From NCBI GenBank assembly GCA_025786725.1, contig JAHLTZ010000021.1, forward strand, positions 62,001 through 126,000: a stretch of DNA of 64,000 nt, given 5' to 3'. Positions 14,524-29,376 of the stretch are shown one piece after another (the first letter of the stretch is position 1; each line of letters begins with the position of its first letter). The notes under the pieces are model-generated. The model was given only the letters and a program-made list of their open reading frames with translations. It was not told the origin of the DNA and searched no databases. The position numbers were made by a program, and so were the translations under genes. This DNA comes from Syncephalis fuscata S228 (lineage: Eukaryota; Fungi; Zoopagomycota).

Positions 14524-17500
14524 AAAATGATATAAAATTAAGTGATAAAGAAAATGTATGAATATTGGTGGTAAAGTATAATGTAGGTGTATCCGATTAA
14601 GGGAACCAAATTGTAATTTACAAAGAGTATAGACAATAGCAAAAGGATAACTTTTCAGAAATTGTTTTGATAGAACATAGTATGACTGAATAAGTGCAAA
14701 GATTCAAACTATTCAACAAATGTAATTATTAATAAACAAACAGCTTTATTAATATAGCGTGTTCAATATATGATAATTAATTAGTTTGCTTAGTAATATT
14801 AAATGGCACATAATGTAAACCACAGACTTTAAAAAAAACTGAATATTTGAATCTACTGTACGGAGAATACACTGTATTAAATATTATATTTAGATAAAAT
14901 TATTGACATTCTTTATTATGAATTGCTATCTAATTTATTAAAAAACAGTAGTCCAAATAAATAACAGAATAATGTTAAACAGTGTCCATATTTAAATTGT
15001 TTAACTCCTAACTGTTCCATAATATGGGACATAAACAGCACGGTTCGATGGTGACCCATTAACTCCTGGACTAGGATCAATTACGATATACCCGGAATAC
15101 GGCTGTATCTTATTCTTTGGAATGTTTCGCTTTATATTAATATGTATCCTGATCTCGGCTGTCTGGTATGGTTGTAGATTAATAGGTTTTGGAAGGAAAC
15201 AGTTGTAAGTACATCTGTTTTTGGCGACGAATTGCTAATAGATGTTGATTTTGGACCTCTAGCATTTGAAATATATGAAAAACTACACGATAGTGCTGTG
15301 GCGGATTGGGATGAAATTTTGATCGGCACATTTACTGTATTGATATAAGTATCTCCATATCAATTGAAGATGGCTCAACGCGAATGTTTTTAGTTTCCAT
15401 TAGTTTGCTAAGATTAATCATGCCAGCACCTTGATATTCCACAGGAGCGTAGTCATTTAGATTGCTATTTTTGACTGGAACTGCGTTGTTTTGTAATATA
15501 GTTTTCATAGCTTTAAAGCCAATCGAACTATATCGATTAAGCTCAACCATCAATGCAGCTGCACCAGCAACATAGGCAACAGCAGCTGATATATTGCTGA
15601 AATAAGGTTTGCTTAGTTGTTTATAAATTGTGCCAGTGTAAACGTTGTAGCTTGGTGCCAAAATGTCAGGATAGTGAGGCGGTATGGATGGCTCGTTTTG
15701 CAATCCAGTTGTGTCAGTAGTAACATTACCATCCTCAATGTAACCATACTTTTTTGCAAAAGTATATTTGTACCCACGGTTATTTCTATAACCTTCTTCT
15801 ATAAATAAAGCATCTTTTTCACTAATATTAAATAAAGGCATATCGCATTCCTTTCTTGTTTTAGGACCGTTTACAGTGATAAGGGCAGTCATTTCTAATG
15901 CCTTAGCAAGCTTTAGCAAGGCCTCAATTTCTGTTTTTTTATACCAAATAAGCGCAATGCCTCCTTGATGAAACCCATTAAAATGTTCATCTGATGTACC
16001 TATAGGATTATTGGGAAAGATATCTACTTCTTTACCAAAACCATAGTTCATGTTTGAACATGTAGACGTAAACTCGATACGACGTCCAGTTGTTTTTTCT
16101 TCAAACCAATGCGATAGACGGTATTTTTGTTTAGCGCCACCGACTTTTAATACAGGAAGGCCTTGGTATGAAAAGAATTGCTGGCTTAAAAAATTATTAT
16201 TTGTTGCTGCAGCAATCATAATCACATCTTTTACTCCAGCAATTATTATCATTTGTCTTAGCTTGGCGCTGTTTTCATCTATAACGGCAATTTCCGGCAA
16301 TACAATAATTTTCATTTGATCATTGATTGCAGCTGTTAGAGCTTGCAACACCAATAAGGTTGAAGTTGGACCTTGGCAGTTAAATACGCGATAGGTGCCA
16401 AGTGTCGCCTCGGGCGCAACTCCAGTAAAATAATCGGTTTTTGCAACGGCAATCCCAGCCATGTGCATGCCAAAATTATTGCAATAAGGTAACTGTTTAG
16501 ATTTGTTATTGCTTTTTACAAAATCGCGATAATAGTTATAATTTCCGTTAAATGCATCAATACCTTGATCAATCCCACTGTCAATGATTCCGATTTTCAC
16601 GTCTCTTCCTTTGAACTCTGCGTCGTGAAGTGCCTTAATACCCGTGGGCACATAGTAAGGCGTTACACAAACTGGCTTGCCGGTGATTTTGGAACTAATA
16701 TAAGGACGGTTGTGAGTAATTTTAGTGCTAAAATCATCTTCATGTGTTATGACGCTGTTTACGGCAAAGTGATGTGTCGAACATAATAGCAATAGTGTAA
16801 AAATCGATAATATTCGCCCTTGTCTTGCTATCATTACCATGATCAATTATCGTATCGAAAGTACTTGTATAGAAAGTGTTGATAAAAGCGAATAAAAAAC
16901 GAGACGCTGTAAAAAAATAATGTATTTTGAATAGGTACCTGGTAGTTATTTTCAAATTCAGATAATACCATAAAGAAGTACTGATATGCGCTAAATGATA
17001 TGTTAGATTATCAAACAGATACTTAAACGTGTATCCAAATAGTGTTAACGATAGAGAGCAGTCAAATAGAAGCCACCAGTGATTTGATTTTTGTTTAAAT
17101 GTTTAGTTTTGGTAATTGCCATGCAATATTATTTCTTCTTTAATCAACCACCACAATTTATATATATTTATAGAACCATCTGCCCGTGGTATTATACGCC
17201 AATAGAAATAGCTTGAAATCAACCTATATTCTAAATTATAAATACGCTATTATATACAGCTATATACATAGTTTGAAATCAACCTATTTAATCATTTGCT
17301 TGCTATTTAGTATATCAATTCCATCTATTTCATTGCATATATATATATGTTTTCATATTGTTTCAGCAATACGTAAAAGCAGTAAGATTTATTAATAAAC
17401 AAATAAGCAACTTATACAACAGATAAGATGGTTTGAATGCTAATATATGTGCTATGGTAACTGATGCCACGCACCATCCAGTCACATGTTCAATAAAACG

Positions 17501-17582
17501 CATTTCTGGTTCAATTATACAGATAGTATTGGATGTAGGTATTTGGCCTTTAAATAACAAAAAATAGTTAATAGATTATTTA
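14524..17582 (-). repeat. Left arm of a ~3.06-kb near-identical inverted duplication (partner 26316-29376)
   Basis: Reverse complement matches the partner throughout (mirrored ORFs in the track; boundaries traced by eye). Confidence 0.95.
15001..16840 (-). CDS. Secreted S8 subtilisin-like protein (PA-like insert and C-terminal Fn3-like domain) with catalytic His replaced by Phe; two -1 frameshifts near 15355 and 15195
   Basis: Signal peptide; KIGIIDSGID (Asp), CNNFGMHMAGIA (canonical CNGHGTHVAGI), FTGVAPEATLGTYRVFNC, PDILAP, SNISAAVAYVAGAAAL, APVEYQGAGMIN; after frame repair continues to YSGYIVIDP..RAVYVPYYGTVRS* (stop 15001), ~613 aa. Confidence 0.88.
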
Positions 17583-17668
17583 TAAAAGATAAAATGCATA
17601 ATGATATACCAAGCAGTTAATAGCGAAAATGATCATTTATTGGATGTTGATGCTGTGCAGCTAAAAAT

Positions 17669-18901
17669 TTATATTGACGATTGAGAAATTGGAGCTAAAC
17701 TGTCTAGTAAATCTTTGGGCGCCTTTCGCCGTTCCAATGATATAGCAAGTAGATCACTCAATAATTGAGGAAACATTGCCAAGGCTTCTTTCTCTATATC
17801 ATTCTCGGCCCATTTAAGAATATCAAGTGGAGTACAGGTGTGTTTCTTGTTGTTATACACGTATAGCATGCGCTCCTTTAACTTGTCAGCGGGCCATAGC
17901 GTCATTACCATTCGCTGCTTATCTATACCATATGGCGGTATTTGCATAAATACTCGATATAAGCTTGAGCCTAATCCCCAGCTATCCAGAAGTCGCATTT
18001 CCATTGGAGCGGTAGGATTATAAAACTCGGGAGGACAAAGTCCAACCATACAAATAGCCGATCGCTTTTCATCACCAGTAAATACAATTGAATTGTCAAA
18101 ATCAATAACTTTGATTTCTATTACTTCAGCTTGAATTGGTTCAGCATTAACAATAATATCTACTAGCCAATGAAGCGTGTTAATAATGGCGATCCAATGA
18201 TTATAATATTGCTAAAAAATTAAAAGTTCAACTTACTTTCTAATTTAAGATCACGGTGTGCAACATGTGCTTCGTGCATAAATGCCACACCTGTTAAACG
18301 TGTTAGTCTATCAATAGTTTACCACGTAGCAACTTGCCTGATAATATCTGGAAAAAAATGCTTTTAAGCTGACGGACCTTAGCGGTATCCATAATTCTTA
18401 AATGGTTGTATAGGTCTACGGATTTACGGAAGCTTGATAACACCATGCATTTGTAGCCGTTTTCCGTTTCAAACTTTTCATAAAGTTCCACGACGTGATT
18501 AGCCATAAGTGCGTTTTTTGGCGTCAGTTTATTTTTAAGTGCATTTAGTGCCTAACATTACATTTATTAGTAGCTAAAAGATCTGCTAATATGCTACCTA
18601 CCGTAAAGGCCTTTATTTCTGTTTCAAACAGATTTTTGTCTTTAATACATTTTAAAAAAGCTGGTTTATCAGTAGCGTAAAGACCTTTTGCAGTATAAAG
18701 ATCGTTTGATTTAGTGCCCGCCAGTTTTTCTGTAAGCATTAGTCTTAGATCTTTAGGTAGAATAGGTTCTACTGAACGCCGCTCGAGCAAAATACGATCT
18801 TTTCTGTGATATTTATATGGCACAGTTGCTTCCACACAATTTATGCTATTGACAGCAAGAATAAGTCCATAAGCAAGGAATAGTCTAGAAAGTAGCAGCA
18901 T
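17669..18901 (-). CDS. Ser/Thr protein kinase-like protein with N-terminal signal peptide, 4 exons
   Basis: MLLLSRLFLAYGLILAVNSINCVEA signal; AFLK, ETE, HVVELYEKF, GVAFMHEAHVAHRDLKLENI, KVIDFD, CPPE, DSWGLG, PPYG; introns 18552-18601, 18291-18337 (GC-AG) and ~18160-18236. Confidence 0.9.
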
Positions 18902-22081: not shown

Positions 22082-24235
22082 TTAAAGTTTAGCACTAGCA
22101 TGGGCCGATGTGCCAGCGTTGGCTTTAGCACGCGCACGGCGACGTTCAACACGAGCACGGGCAGCATCTAGCACAGGGCGTACTGTGCTGTCGTAAGCCG
22201 GATAGACATCGGTCTGGTTGGCCGGTTCTTGTTCTGCCATTGATGTCATGGCTTCGTAGACCTTGCCATCAGAGCGCCCAAGCGCCGAATGCAATAAATA
22301 GTCTGGAAGAGCAAAGGCATCGACCAAAGCAACTGCATTTGGACGCAGTTCTGTCAGCAGTGCACGAACCGTGTCCCGCACTAGACTAGCCTGTTTAGAT
22401 GACATAAAGCCATCTTCGAAAAGATCGGCCAAACAGCTCTGCTCAAGCGTATGTAAAGCGAAAAGCGAGGAAAGCGCACAAAGTGGCGCACGCAAGTCTT
22501 CAGGAATACCAGGACGATGGGCCACATTAACAAAGTTGCGTACTAGTAATAGCTGGCAATGTGCCTCCGATGCACGATGAATCTCTACAAGCGATTCGTT
22601 CCAGGTACGGCCACGCGGCCCAAGCGATTCGGCAGCAAGTTCAATGAGGCGAGCAGCACGATGTGTGAATGCGGCAATTTGCACCTCTGGTCGACGCAAG
22701 TCCTCAAGTTGATTGACCTTCCAGGTGACGGGTCCGGGCGACGTATGCTTAGCGATCAAGTAATGGCGTATATAAGCAGCTGTCTGGTTCTGGACCGTTG
22801 GCTTTCGGTTCTCACCAGCGGAGGCGGCACCACCAGCACCATTTTTCTGCAGTTCTTGCACGACCGACCGGAAGGTCTTAAGCAAATAGCGCGTGGTTTG
22901 CTGAGTCAAAATATAGTTGTCGCCTTCCCAGGTAACATTTGGCAAGACATCAGCGTAGAAAGTGGTTAAGCCAGAGAATGCCGAAAAGCCATGGCCGCCA
23001 CAGGCACGGCGGCACGTCTCGGTACCAGCAATGGCAATGTTGCTAGTAAGTGATTTAAGGCCTGACGAACTAGCGTGGATATCGGCAAGCATTTCAAGAT
23101 CGCCATCACGTAGCTTTTGTGTAAATTCTTCATACATTCGCATCATCCATTGTCCGGTAACCATTAAAGCGTAGGCTTGGGCAATGGCTGGGAAAAGACG
23201 ATACTGTAGCGTTGTGTAGTTAATGACTTGCATTTCTTCACCAGCAGCCACTGCTTCCTCAGTGGCGCCGGCATCGGCAAACTGACGACGTACCGCAGCA
23301 TACCGTGTAGCAATCGTGGTGGCGCGGGCCAAGTACAAGCCCACACCGCGTACAATGCTAGCACGTACAAACACCATTGTACCGTAGCCGAGTTTGGCAT
23401 TGGGCGGCTTGATGTAGTCGCCTTCAGGCGTGACACGAGCATATTTAGATAGCATATGATCGCGTGGAATACGATAGTGATCAAAAAGCAAATAGCCATT
23501 GTCAATCGTATTGACGCCAAATTTAGGACCTATGTCGCCAACGGTAATGCCAGGCAACGGACGATGATCTTCCAATGAACGAAGTGGTACGAAAAACGTA
23601 TGAGGCCCGTGGTCGCGGCCTTTAGTGACAAGTCGCGCCACGACAACGGCATGGGTGGCGGCCAATCCCAAAGAACCAACCCACCACTTGCTAGAAGTAA
23701 GTGTAGGTGAGTGAAATTCAAATTCTTGCGTTTCTGGAATATAGGTTGCAACTGTCTCGAGTCCTTGGACATTACTTCCATGACCCAGCTCAGTTTGAGC
23801 GTAACAACCAATAATCTCGTAGTTTAATGCTTTGACCAAAAAGCGACGACGTTGGTCACTGTCACATTGACCTTGGAGTGTTGGGATAAACATGGCGCGG
23901 TGAAGCGTGAATGGGCCAGACTCGTCGATTAAGTACTCGGCCACAGCAATATCTTCATACGTCCAACGATGCTTCATCATCAGCTCAACGAGTCGTTTCT
24001 CTTTGCCAAATGCATGATGCAAACGCTCTTCACGGCTGCTGTAATAGCGCTTACTCTTATCGAATGCCGGATCGTTCTCAATTATTTCAAGAAGACGCGT
24101 CTGGCGTTCTAAATGTTCTTCGCCATAAAGAAAATGAGAAAGTTTGCTTGGATCAAATGATGCTTGTTGACGTTCCCGTGCTAATAATTCAGTGCCTTGC
24201 GGTCCAGAAGGTTTAAGATTTTTTGGAAATTTCAT
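22082..24235 (-). CDS. POX1: Peroxisomal acyl-CoA oxidase, intronless
   Basis: 717-aa ORF with GCYAQTELGHGSNVQGLET, SSKWWVG, GDIGPKFG, CRRACGGHGF, TWEGDN; C-terminal PTS1 -AKL. Confidence 0.97.
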   Translation of the reverse strand: MKFPKNLKPSGPQGTELLARERQQASFDPSKLSHFLYGEEHLERQTRLLEIIENDPAFDKSKRYYSSREERLHHAFGKEKRLVELMMKHRWTYEDIAVAEYLIDESGPFTLHRAMFIPTLQGQCDSDQRRRFLVKALNYEIIGCYAQTELGHGSNVQGLETVATYIPETQEFEFHSPTLTSSKWWVGSLGLAATHAVVVARLVTKGRDHGPHTFFVPLRSLEDHRPLPGITVGDIGPKFGVNTIDNGYLLFDHYRIPRDHMLSKYARVTPEGDYIKPPNAKLGYGTMVFVRASIVRGVGLYLARATTIATRYAAVRRQFADAGATEEAVAAGEEMQVINYTTLQYRLFPAIAQAYALMVTGQWMMRMYEEFTQKLRDGDLEMLADIHASSSGLKSLTSNIAIAGTETCRRACGGHGFSAFSGLTTFYADVLPNVTWEGDNYILTQQTTRYLLKTFRSVVQELQKNGAGGAASAGENRKPTVQNQTAAYIRHYLIAKHTSPGPVTWKVNQLEDLRRPEVQIAAFTHRAARLIELAAESLGPRGRTWNESLVEIHRASEAHCQLLLVRNFVNVAHRPGIPEDLRAPLCALSSLFALHTLEQSCLADLFEDGFMSSKQASLVRDTVRALLTELRPNAVALVDAFALPDYLLHSALGRSDGKVYEAMTSMAEQEPANQTDVYPAYDSTVRPVLDAARARVERRRARAKANAGTSAHASAKL

Positions 24236-24878: not shown

Positions 24879-26315
24879 GACATTCATTAAGCACATGTAA
24901 GTATTGCTACCTATATTTGCTTCTTATTGATATGTAGGTATCAACACTTATTTACTCACCTAAATATTATAATTTAATTTTAGTTTATTTACTGTTAAAC
25001 TGATGCGTGACCTTTTAAAAGTGCTACATATAAGCTGATATTTAACATGTCTCTCAGTTTGAATTTTCCAATCACGCTACTTGCTCATGTGCAGCATTAT
25101 AATAATTATAAATACAAAGTAACAAATATTGTAGACAATTTCAAAGTTGTAAATTATTTGTTATTTATGTTAACAAAAAATTGTAATAAATACAATCTAA
25201 TATAGTTAATAATAAACAAGCGTACAATTTAATAATTTAGACGGAATGCATCGTTAGCATTGTGGGAGCTGTATACAGATGCTTGTATATCATGCTTATT
25301 AGTTGAATAAATAAATAAAATTGCCGCTTTGATAGCAACACCTAGTATGGAAATACACACATCAAAGTCCCAAACGAGCAACTTGAAATAGTTGCATGTA
25401 TTTAAATTTTGAGAATCTACCGTAGCATATGGTTTTCATGTCAATTTTAGAATCTTCCAAGTATTTTGATGACAACATTAACTAAAGTCTGCTTCATCAC
25501 AGCCTAAATCAAAAGTAATTAGAATAATACTTTTCTCGTCACTTTCTCCAATTATAAAAAACTTCCATATAGTCTGGTAGATTATAAAACTTGCCAGTAG
25601 CAAGATCTATTATTTAGTGTCGGCTCTTCTTTGGTTTTAATTTTAGGCCTGCCAAATGACCGGATATTATAGTACTGCTAAATCATATGGCAATCATTCA
25701 TATTACAAGGCATTCTAGCAGTAACCCAATTCTTATCAGCGCATGCTGGTATATATACATATTATCGTTAGTGCGTAAAACTGTATAGTGACTGTCGATA
25801 AATAAAGTTCTATATAATATGGACCTACAAATGGCTTAACAAGTAGCAAATTTATAGAATCTTTTGTTTCAAATTTAAAATCTCATGTGGACAAATAAAG
25901 CCAGCATTTTCAAAATATATGTTGCCAATTGCTATAAAAAACCGAGGTGCATCTCCAACTATAGGTGGCATGCAAAGGTTGGATTTAAATGTGGCCATGG
26001 CAATACGTGCAGTGCAGATAAAAATGAAAAGTCATCTAAAATATCTAATAGATTGTAGCGTCCAAACAAAAAATAGTAATATATAACGTATTACAATGCT
26101 TAGTGTCGCACCATTGTCTTAAATGGGCTCTTACTGCAAAGTTTTTTGAACCTTTTGAAAATTGCACAATATATTCAAGATACATGTCTAAAATACATTT
26201 TTTTAAAAATTAAAATATTTCAATTGGTTGATTCAATAAAATTACGTTTACTATTTATTTAAATAATATCAGCGATTCATTTTATTAGCTGCTTTATTTA
26301 TTTCTATTAGTTTAT

Positions 26316-29300
26316 TAAATAATCTATTAACTATTTTTTGTTATTTAAAGGCCAAATACCTACATCCAATACTATCTGTATAATTGAACCAGAAATGCGT
26401 TTTATTGAACATGTGACTGGATGGTGCGTGGCATCAGTTACCATAGCACATATATTAGCATTCAAACCATCTTATCTGTTGTATAAGTTGCTTATTTGTT
26501 TATTAATAAATCTTACTGCTTTTACGTATTGCTGAAACAATATGAAAACATATATATATATGCAATGAAATAGATGGAATTGATATACTAAATAGCAAGC
26601 AAATGATTAAATAGGTTGATTTCAAACTATGTATATAGCTGTATATAATAGCGTATTTATAATTTAGAATATAGGTTGATTTCAAGCTATTTCTATTGGC
26701 GTATAATACCACGGGCAGATGGTTCTATAAATATATATAAATTGTGGTGGTTGATTAAAGAAGAAATAATATTGCATGGCAATTACCAAAACTAAACATT
26801 TAAACAAAAATCAAATCACTGGTGGCTTCTATTTGACTGCTCTCTATCGTTAACACTATTTGGATACACGTTTTAAGTATCTGTTTGATAATCTAACATA
26901 TCATTTAGCGCATATCAGTACTTCTTTATGGTATTATCTGAATTTGAAAATAACTACCAGGTACCTATTCAAAATACCATTATTTTTTTACAGCGTCTCG
27001 TTTTTTATTCGCTTTTATCAACACTTTCTATACAAGTACTTTCGATACGATAATTGATCATGGTAATGATAGCAAGACAAGGGCGAATATTATCGATTTT
27101 TACACTATTGCTATTATGTTCGACACATCACTTTGCCGTAAACAGCGTCATAACACATGAAGATGATTTTAGCACTAAAATTACTCACAACCGTCCTTAT
27201 ATTAGTTCCAAAATCACCGGCAAGCCAGTTTGTGTAACGCCTTACTATGTGCCCACGGGTATTAAGGCACTTCACGACGCAGAGTTCAAAGGAAGAGACG
27301 TGAAAATCGGAATCATTGACAGTGGGATTGATCAAGGTATTGATGCATTTAACGGAAATTATAACTATTATCGCGATTTTGTAAAAAGCAATAACAAATC
27401 TAAACAGTTACCTTATTGCAATAATTTTGGCATGCACATGGCTGGGATTGCCGTTGCAAAAACCGATTATTTTACTGGAGTTGCGCCCGAGGCGACACTT
27501 GGTACCTATCGCGTATTTAACTGCCAAGGTCCAACTTCAACCTTATTGGTGTTGCAAGCTCTAACAGCTGCAATCAATGATCAAATGAAAATTATTGTAT
27601 TGCCGGAAATTGCCGTTATAGATGAAAACAGCGCCAAGCTAAGACAAATGATAATAATTGCTGGAGTAAAAGATGTGATTATGATTGCTGCAGCAACATA
27701 ATAATTTTTTAAGCCAGCAATTCTTTTCATACCAAGGCCTTCCTGTATTAAAAGTCGGTGGCGCTAAACAAAAATACCGTCTATCGCATTGGTTTGAAGA
27801 AAAAACAACTGGACGTCGTATCGAGTTTACGTCTACATGTTCAAACATGAACTATGGTTTTGGTAAAGAAGTAGATATCTTTCCCAATAATCCTATAGGT
27901 ACATCAGATGAACATTTTAATGGGTTTCATCAAGAGGCATTGCGCTTATTTGGTATAAAAAAACAGAAATTGAGGCCTTGCTAAAGCTTGCTAAGGCATT
28001 AGAAATGACTGCCCTTATCACTGTAAACGGTCCCTAAAACAAGAAAGGAATGCGATATGCCTTTATTTAATATTAGTGAAAAAGATGCTTTATTTATAGA
28101 AGAAGGTTATAGAAATAACCGTGGGTACAAATATACTTTTGCAAAAAAGTATGGTTACATTGAGGATGGTAATGTTACTACTGACACAACTGGATTGCAA
28201 AACGAGCCATCCATACCGCCTCACTATCCTGACATTTTGGCACCAAGCTACAACGTTTACACTGGCACAATTTATAAACAACTAAGCAAACCTTATTTCA
28301 GCAATATATCAGCTGCTGTTGCCTATGTTGCTGGTGCAGCTGCATTGATGGTTGAGCTTAATCGATATAGTTCGATTGGCTTTAAAGCTATGAAAACTAT
28401 ATTACAAAACAACGCAGTTCCAGTCAAAAATAGCAATCTAAATGACTACGCTCCTGTGGAATATCAAGGTGCTGGCATGATTAATCTTAGCAAACTAATG
28501 GAAACTAAAAACATTCGCGTGGAGCCATCTTCAGTTGATATGGAGATACTTATATCAATACAGTAAATGTGCCGATCAAAATTTCATCCCAATCCACCAC
28601 AGCACTATCGTGTAGTTTTTCATATATTTCAAATGCTAGAGGTCCAAAATCAACATCTATTAGTAATTCGTCGCCAAAAACAGATGTACTTACAACTGTT
28701 TCCTTCCAAAACCTATTAATCTACAACCATACCAGACAGCCGAGATCAGGATACATATTAATATAAAGCGAAACATTCCAAAGAATAAGATACAGCCGTA
28801 TTCCGGGTATATCGTAATTGATCCTAGTCCAGGAGTTAATGGGTCACCATCGAACCGTGCTGTTTATGTCCCATATTATGGAACAGTTAGGAGTTAAACA
28901 ATTTAAATATGAACACTGTTTAACATTATTCTGTTATTTATTTGGACTACTGTTTTTTAATAAATTAGATAGCAATTCATAATAAAGAATGTCAATAATT
29001 TTATCTAAATATAATATTTAATATAGTGTATTCTCCGTACAGTAGATTCAAATATTCAGTTTTTTTTAAAGTCTGTGGTTTTACATTATGTGCCATTTAA
29101 TATTACTAAGCAAACTAATTAATCTATCATATATTGAACACGCTATATTAATAAAGCTGTTTGTTTATTAATAATTACATTTGTTGAATAGTTTGAATCT
29201 TTGCACTTATTCAGTCATACTATGTTCTATCAAAATAATTTTTGAAAAGTTATCCTTTTGCAATTGTCTATACTCTTTGTAAATTACAATTTGGTTCCCT

Positions 29301-29376
29301 TAATCGGATACACCTACATTATACTTTACCACCAATATTCATACATTTTCTTTATCACTTCATTTTATATCATTTT
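26316..29376 (+). repeat. Right arm of the ~3.06-kb inverted duplication (partner 14524-17582)
   Basis: Near-identical to the reverse complement of the left arm; about 11 substitutions and several 1-2 bp indels noticed. Confidence 0.95.
27060..28897 (+). pseudogene. Second copy of the His-less subtilisin-like gene; five frameshifts as assembled (two shared with copy 1), may be intact in vivo
   Basis: ORF pieces 27054-27701, 27685-27984, 28057-28566 and 28569-28766 almost identical to copy 1; private indels at ~27699 (-2 A), ~27934 (-1 G), ~28033 (+1 C), all in homopolymers. Confidence 0.7.

Follow-up and report, generated by a model that had tools for sequence, protein, structure and literature searches.

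A gene on the minus strand of the Syncephalis fuscata genome (contig JAHLTZ010000021.1) was found to encode a complete, true eukaryotic protein-kinase domain behind a predicted signal peptide. The gene lies at positions 18901..17669 of the stretch of 64,000 nucleotides that was analysed (hereafter the window). Sequence comparisons place its product in a family of kinases and pseudokinases with signal peptides that is specific to the lineage of zoopagalean mycoparasites and has expanded heavily there. The protein is probably a kinase of the secretory pathway that is exported in soluble form, most likely at the haustorium-host interface. The initial annotation had proposed an effector that a parasitic fungus delivers into host cytoplasm, and the source is indeed such an organism: S. 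fuscata is an obligate mycoparasite (Zoopagales).

Translation of the open reading frames and exons of the window gave a gene of four exons that runs from ATG to TAA (17669..18901, minus strand, as are all features of the gene given below). Upstream stops precede the ATG at 18901, which is the first in-frame ATG. The deposited product (P0023, 358 aa), named "kinase-like domain-containing protein [Syncephalis fuscata]" at NCBI, is 100% identical to the translations of all four exons, whereas the model supported by homology comes to about 352 aa. All full-length analyses were run on P0023 as deposited, and the searches with exons were made singly. Exon 1 (18602..18901, 100 codons) corresponds to residues 1-100 of P0023 with a 100% match and ends at the donor gtaggt. 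It carries the signal-like N-terminus, a linker, strands beta1-beta3 with the motif AFLKC, and the start of helix alphaC. After a GT-AG intron of 50 nt (intron 1, 18552..18601), exon 2 (18338..18551, 71 codons plus 1 nt) runs from the end of alphaC through beta4, beta5 (which carries the invariant C135), and alphaD into the first part of alphaE. Intron 2 (18291..18337) has a homology-supported GC donor (CAG/GCAAGT) and is followed by exon 3 (18237..18290, 54 nt), which encodes the end of alphaE and the catalytic loop up to H-R-D-L-K-L-E. Intron 3 (18160..18236) begins with gtaagt and ends in a tandem acceptor, ctagtag. Exon 4 (17669..18159) contains beta7-beta8, the DFD motif (18095-18103), the activation segment, the PPE and DSWGLG motifs, and the C-lobe up to the TAA stop.

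The DNA of the window is AT-rich, mainly 31-42% G+C. Two inverted-repeat arms of about 3 kb each (14524-17587 and 26311-29376) are 97-100% identical in seven collinear blocks and enclose a unique segment of 8.7 kb, and the near end of the kinase gene lies 82 bp inside this segment. An S8 subtilase gene is present in each arm, seen as an open reading frame at 15332-16846 on the minus strand and as two at 27054-27701 and 28057-28566 on the plus strand. An intronless open reading frame at 22082-24235 (minus strand) encodes an acyl-CoA oxidase of 717 aa with four Pfam ACOX domains. The G+C content of this block is 49.6%, compared to 31-38% in its neighbours.

P0023 matched the Pfam family Pkinase (PF00069) with 56.9 bits (cut-off 31.7, E 2.8e-15), and the same family was matched by all 38 aligned relatives. 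Exon 4 alone gave a weak Pfam match (E 6.6e-4). A structure prediction from the single sequence reached a pLDDT of 39.8 and was replaced by an AlphaFold model based on the family alignment (pLDDT 85.3, pTM 0.81), which has the bilobal fold of a kinase. When this fold was compared with Foldseek, a probability of 1.00 was obtained to Sky1p, DCLK1, ULK1, and CDK2, and the Atlas neighbours were all kinases.

As the initial annotation had read from the letters of the gene, the catalytic Lys of the AFLK motif and the Glu of alphaC are intact (K84 and E95). H188-R189-D190 and D215-F216-D217 are present as well. The codons for the beta3 Lys and for the Cys that follows it, C85, which is invariant in the family, occupy 18647..18652. 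The description of a degenerate Gly-rich loop and of DFD in place of DFG also held: the turn between beta1 and beta2 has a single Gly and no GxGxxG, with the hairpin still modelled (strands 54-56 and 68-75). It had further been suggested that these two alterations may make the kinase constitutive or atypical. However, the glycine-rich loop is missing throughout the family, and DFD or DFN replaces DFG almost everywhere in the 38 aligned proteins. Both traits are shared by the whole family and therefore say nothing specific about constitutive activity of this gene.

The deposited product and the homology-supported model differ at two splice sites. In P0023, intron 2 starts at an in-frame GT at 18322, which adds five residues to helix alphaE. 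This insertion is absent from every relative, and alignments show a gap of 4-5 residues exactly at this place. The GC donor at 18337 lies in an otherwise ideal context and splits a Gly codon after its first base, and the introns of paralogues interrupt the same Gly codon in the same phase. An alternative acceptor at 18212 was rejected, since by eye it reads into a stop codon.

The second difference concerns the catalytic Asn. When the first AG of the tandem acceptor of intron 3 is used (intron end 18163), as in the deposited product, the catalytic loop reads HRDLKLE-I-D and lacks this residue, whereas the second AG (intron end 18160) gives HRDLKLE-N. We regard the second AG as supported by homology, because the homologous intron of paralogues splits the Asn codon A/AT, exactly as the second AG does here, and because almost every relative in the family alignment (38 proteins) has Asn in this column of the catalytic loop. 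On these sequence comparisons, HRDLKLEN appears to be the homology-supported reading, although this is short of proof. The earlier statement that HRDLKLEN is intact thus stands in part: HRD is present and the Asn fits the homology, but the Asn requires the second AG and is missing from the deposited protein.

If the first AG were used, the product would be a pseudokinase or a binding protein; many of the dead paralogues presumably also act through binding. This is the form represented by P0023, and half of the aligned family lacks at least one catalytic residue (the full set of K, E, D, N, and D is retained in 19 of the 38 proteins, and the rest have lost one or more). Nevertheless, we consider it improbable for this gene. 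In addition to the Asn column and the position of the paralogue introns, all other catalytic residues have been kept, even the Arg of HRD; P0023 is the only HRD member among the 38 aligned proteins, the others having HGD, HSD, HTD, or HND. The form produced by the second AG looks catalytically complete. It would contain all five catalytic residues (K84, E95, the Asp of HRD, the Asn, and the first Asp of DFD) and would probably be an active Ser/Thr kinase without a canonical Gly-rich loop.

The predicted signal peptide comprises codons 1-25 (18827..18901). Its n-region contains R6, the sole basic residue within residues 1-25, followed by an uncharged hydrophobic core of 11 residues (h-region, L7-V17) and a polar c-region that ends in V23-E24-A25. 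In the model from the family alignment, residues 2-22 form a helix, the stretch 23-41/42 is of low confidence (disordered), and the kinase fold begins at about residue 50. A scan of the whole protein revealed no second hydrophobic or transmembrane segment, no N-glycosylation sequon, and no C-terminus of the HDEL/KDEL type. The initial annotation had described a signal ending in VEA followed by a bare kinase domain without a transmembrane segment, and the sequence does contain such a domain behind a signal-like N-terminus.

The same arrangement recurs among the relatives. A signal-like N-terminus was present in 27 of 32 full-length family proteins. Among 81 unrelated long kinases that the same search had listed, it was present in 8, with signal-likeness scored by one simple heuristic. 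It is kept as a feature, not as a sequence, across paralogues and two genera. These comparisons indicate that the pairing of signal and kinase is not a product of chance.

The hydrophobic stretch might also be an uncleaved membrane anchor or an artefact of annotation, in which case the kinase would stay inside the parasite cell. L2-I20 can be read as a mostly hydrophobic span of 19 residues, and basic residues are clustered 13-25 residues downstream of it. We consider this explanation very improbable. R6 precedes the uncharged core, which is only 11 residues long, the polar c-region behind it leads to V-x-A, and the 27 relatives that share the feature have clearer ends of the AxA type. Moreover, the Cys pair described below is invariant, some paralogues have Ser/Thr-rich linkers, and the start codon is the first in-frame ATG past the upstream stops. 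Entry of this predicted signal-bearing kinase into the secretory pathway is well supported, albeit indirectly.

A short pro-region ending in a dibasic, Kex2-type site had also been proposed. The motif LERR is present at codons 39-42 (18776..18787) and would be accessible, since the linker is disordered. However, a second LERR occurs at residue 337 inside the fold, the pattern [KR]R is found three times in P0023, and a dibasic pair is present in the linker of only 6 of 29 relatives. LERR was therefore rejected as a significant pro-site, being unconserved in the family and no more frequent than chance. Kex2-type processing at this motif is possible, but it is not supported beyond chance.

The family is large in the genome of S. 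fuscata itself, searched as an assembly of 29.4 Mb. The best matches of exon 4 in its own genome reached only 28-30% identity, and a profile of nine C-lobe exons gave 81 matches at E<=1e-5, some of which come from duplicated contigs and some probably from ordinary kinases. Family copies with identical scores and coordinate offsets were found on the contigs C68/C340/C337, C35/C193, C1/C76, C90/C97, and C207/C306, which suggests that they are uncollapsed haplotypes or very recent segmental duplications. Because copies are repeated across contigs, the raw match counts overstate the number of genes. We inspected 26 of the matched loci. Nearly all of the first exons consist of a Met with a hydrophobic signal-like stretch, a variable linker, and a beta3 strand with (P)AF(L/I)KC. 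These paralogues share the intron positions and phases of the window's gene: one intron follows the start of alphaC, another interrupts the Gly codon that precedes (V/L)A(F/Y)(M/L)H, and a third splits the Asn codon. On one contig (C328:346456-350545, loci L006, L023, and L037), at least three genes of the family lie in a tandem cluster. One of them encodes P0017, the nearest relative of P0023, and one downstream piece of this cluster has an in-frame TGA.

Some relatives have Thr-rich or Pro-rich repeat linkers, which are typical of extracellular proteins. The S. fuscata proteins P0015 (455 aa) and P0126 (474 aa) have long repeats of the Thr-rich TATETVTA type or the Pro-rich PPPLPPRN type between the signal and the kinase domain, and these resemble mucin-like or proline-rich extracellular spacers.

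A C-lobe profile of 23 rows was searched against 1.84 billion representative proteins and gave 27 matches at E<=1e-30. The members that were looked up came from S. fuscata, S. plumigaleata, S. pseudoplumigaleata, and Thamnocephalis sphaerospora, besides a few unnamed metagenome fragments. At the top of this search stood a protein of the diatom Nitzschia sp. (P0001, 1418 aa) and one of the chrysophyte Epipyxis sp. (P0003, 1802 aa), each with five matched stretches; they may contain several kinase domains or result from the fusion of gene models. A family that combines signal and kinase, as the initial annotation had envisaged, is thus found in the genome of S. fuscata and in related Syncephalis and Thamnocephalis. 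Both in its own genome and among the 1.84 billion representatives, the nearest relatives of P0023 are signal-bearing kinases of these two genera and not an ordinary cytosolic kinase.

Within this family P0023 is divergent. Its identity to any relative is at most about 30-32%, and in a word-index search it found itself as the sole match; the same kind of search with exon 4 alone gave no match, within a length window that excludes full-length relatives. To the Thamnocephalis proteins P0031 and P0079 it showed 28% (E 8e-23) and 26% identity (E 1e-19), respectively, each over about 240 residues. With such members in Thamnocephalis, a restriction of the family to one species or one genus was rejected. 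A quick maximum-likelihood tree split the family from three ordinary kinases with an SH-aLRT of 98 and placed P0023 within the family clade, on a long branch, as sister to P0017 (support 88). Because it lacks a close orthologue and sits on a long branch, P0023 could be drifting. The motifs of the family are all recognizable in P0023, namely (P)AF(L/I)KC, the Cys pair, (I/V)DFD, PPE, DSW-LG, and an Arg in the C-terminal region. In the 38 aligned proteins, C85 in beta3 and C135 in beta5 are invariant wherever these columns are covered, and together with P239, E240, D254, W256, and R340 they make up a set of positions that are invariant or nearly so.

According to the mechanism that we propose, the N-terminal 25 residues would serve as a cleavable signal peptide that is cut near A25/T26, as their anatomy and the family-wide occurrence of the feature suggest. 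Entry into the ER would be co-translational, and a disulfide between C85 and C135 probably braces the N-lobe. The conservation of the two Cys residues and their positions point to such a bond: in the model they lie in neighbouring strands of the N-lobe (79-86 and 134-139), and in kinase structures the position after the catalytic Lys and the position three before the gatekeeper face the same side. The kinase, with a mass of about 37 kDa, would then be released from the cell in soluble form, perhaps after trimming within the disordered linker. Soluble release is expected because neither a retention signal nor a membrane span or a GPI-type tail is present. The protein would most likely belong to the secreted arsenal that the parasite uses at the interface between haustorium and host, and its site of action might be the lumen, the interface, or the interior of the host cell. 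As ATP is scarce outside cells, catalysis there is not self-evident. Action within the secretory pathway or within the host is therefore favoured.

A related possibility is that the kinase phosphorylates the parasite's own secreted proteins, in the ER/Golgi or in the extrahaustorial space, and does not reach the host cytoplasm. A comparable case is Fam20C, a kinase that acts in the Golgi. The expected anatomy would be the same, i.e., a signal, the Cys pair, and no retention motif, and inspection of the alignment revealed no recognizable host-translocation motif common to the linkers of the family. There is also a precedent in WNG1, a secreted kinase that is active without a Gly loop and whose substrates can be parasite proteins secreted along with it (PMC6442604). 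On the other hand, both an ER/Golgi retention signal and a membrane anchor are absent, and a family that is this large, diverges rapidly, and includes dead kinases looks more like an arsenal directed at the host. We hold this restricted role to be unlikely. Location in the lumen of the secretory pathway or at the parasite-host interface as such fits as well as delivery into the host cytoplasm. Under the preferred reading of a kinase exported in soluble form, the protein is a plausible candidate tool for host manipulation, judging from its sequence and its relatives.

One could go further and regard the family of Syncephalis and Thamnocephalis as the fungal counterpart of the apicomplexan secreted kinome, in which active kinases and pseudokinases, dozens in all, would be exported and brought to bear on a fungal host by way of haustoria. 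In such a system, the present gene would be the only active member of the RD type (HRD), and the choice between the two AGs of TAGTAG could produce one active and one dead isoform from the same gene. We consider this extended scenario unlikely as a whole.

Apicomplexa, oomycetes, and bacteria are established sources of secreted effector kinases. In the literature on Zoopagales genomes and mycoparasite effectors that we searched, no published description of secreted effector kinases in true fungi was found. Likewise, the literature searched on kinases and secretomes of Syncephalis, Thamnocephalis, and Piptocephalis yielded no description of a signal-peptide kinase family, and secreted kinases are absent from the single-cell genome paper (PMC6784888) and from the 2026 survey of mycoparasite effectors (PMC13188720). 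The signal-peptide kinase family of these mycoparasites is apparently undescribed. As a conserved and expanded set, such kinases of haustorium-forming mycoparasites would add a new class to the candidate effectors of fungi, and they would represent convergent evolution with the ROPK and FIKK systems. Moreover, concrete structural hypotheses follow from the invariant pair of Cys residues and from the absence of the Gly loop.

The initial annotation had compared the protein with the secreted kinases of Apicomplexa. This comparison holds as an analogy only. Like the ROPK of Toxoplasma (ROP18, ROP17, and the pseudokinase ROP5), the proteins described here form a parasite-specific, expanded family with signal peptides and a kinase fold that has apparently active as well as dead members. 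They differ in that the N-terminal extension subdomain of ROPK is not seen in our model, in their fungal lineage, and in the route of export, which is by the rhoptry in ROPK and would be by classical secretion or the haustorium here. Kinship with ROP kinases was rejected. ROP5 appeared only with exon 4 alone (E 0.01-0.04 over 43 residues), no ROPK was among the best 60 PDB matches of the family profile, and the fold matched ordinary kinases. The FIKK kinases of Plasmodium are likewise exported, parasite-specific, and expanded, and lack a canonical Gly-rich loop, but they carry a PEXEL-type signal and their own FIKK motif and are apicomplexan.

The nearest solved relatives are the CAMK-like kinases ULK1, DAPK1, and RAD53. 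The family profile came closest to ULK1 and DAPK1 (E about 1e-27), and in the comparison of folds ULK1 gave a target-normalised TM of 0.72-0.74. However, these three kinases are cytosolic and have no signal, they possess GxGxxG and DFG, they lack the Cys pair at the position after the catalytic Lys and in beta5, and their identity is below 20%.

Two further secreted kinases can be compared as analogues. CRN8 of Phytophthora infestans is a secreted kinase effector of a haustorium-forming filamentous parasite and is active in host cells (PMC3426532). It is an unrelated, modular oomycete protein with a CRN N-terminal translocation region and acts on a plant host, whereas the 25 residues between signal and kinase domain of P0023 contain no CRN region or LFLAK-type motif. 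WNG1 (With-No-Gly-loop) of Toxoplasma is secreted and active, and acts on co-secreted proteins in the parasitophorous vacuole, outside the parasite cytosol (PMC6442604). It resembles the present protein as a secreted kinase without a canonical Gly-rich loop, but it is apicomplexan and specific homology to it was not found; moreover, in P0023 only GxGxxG is lost, while the hairpin of beta1 and beta2 is still modelled. As analogues, CRN8 and WNG1 are the closest published systems that we found.
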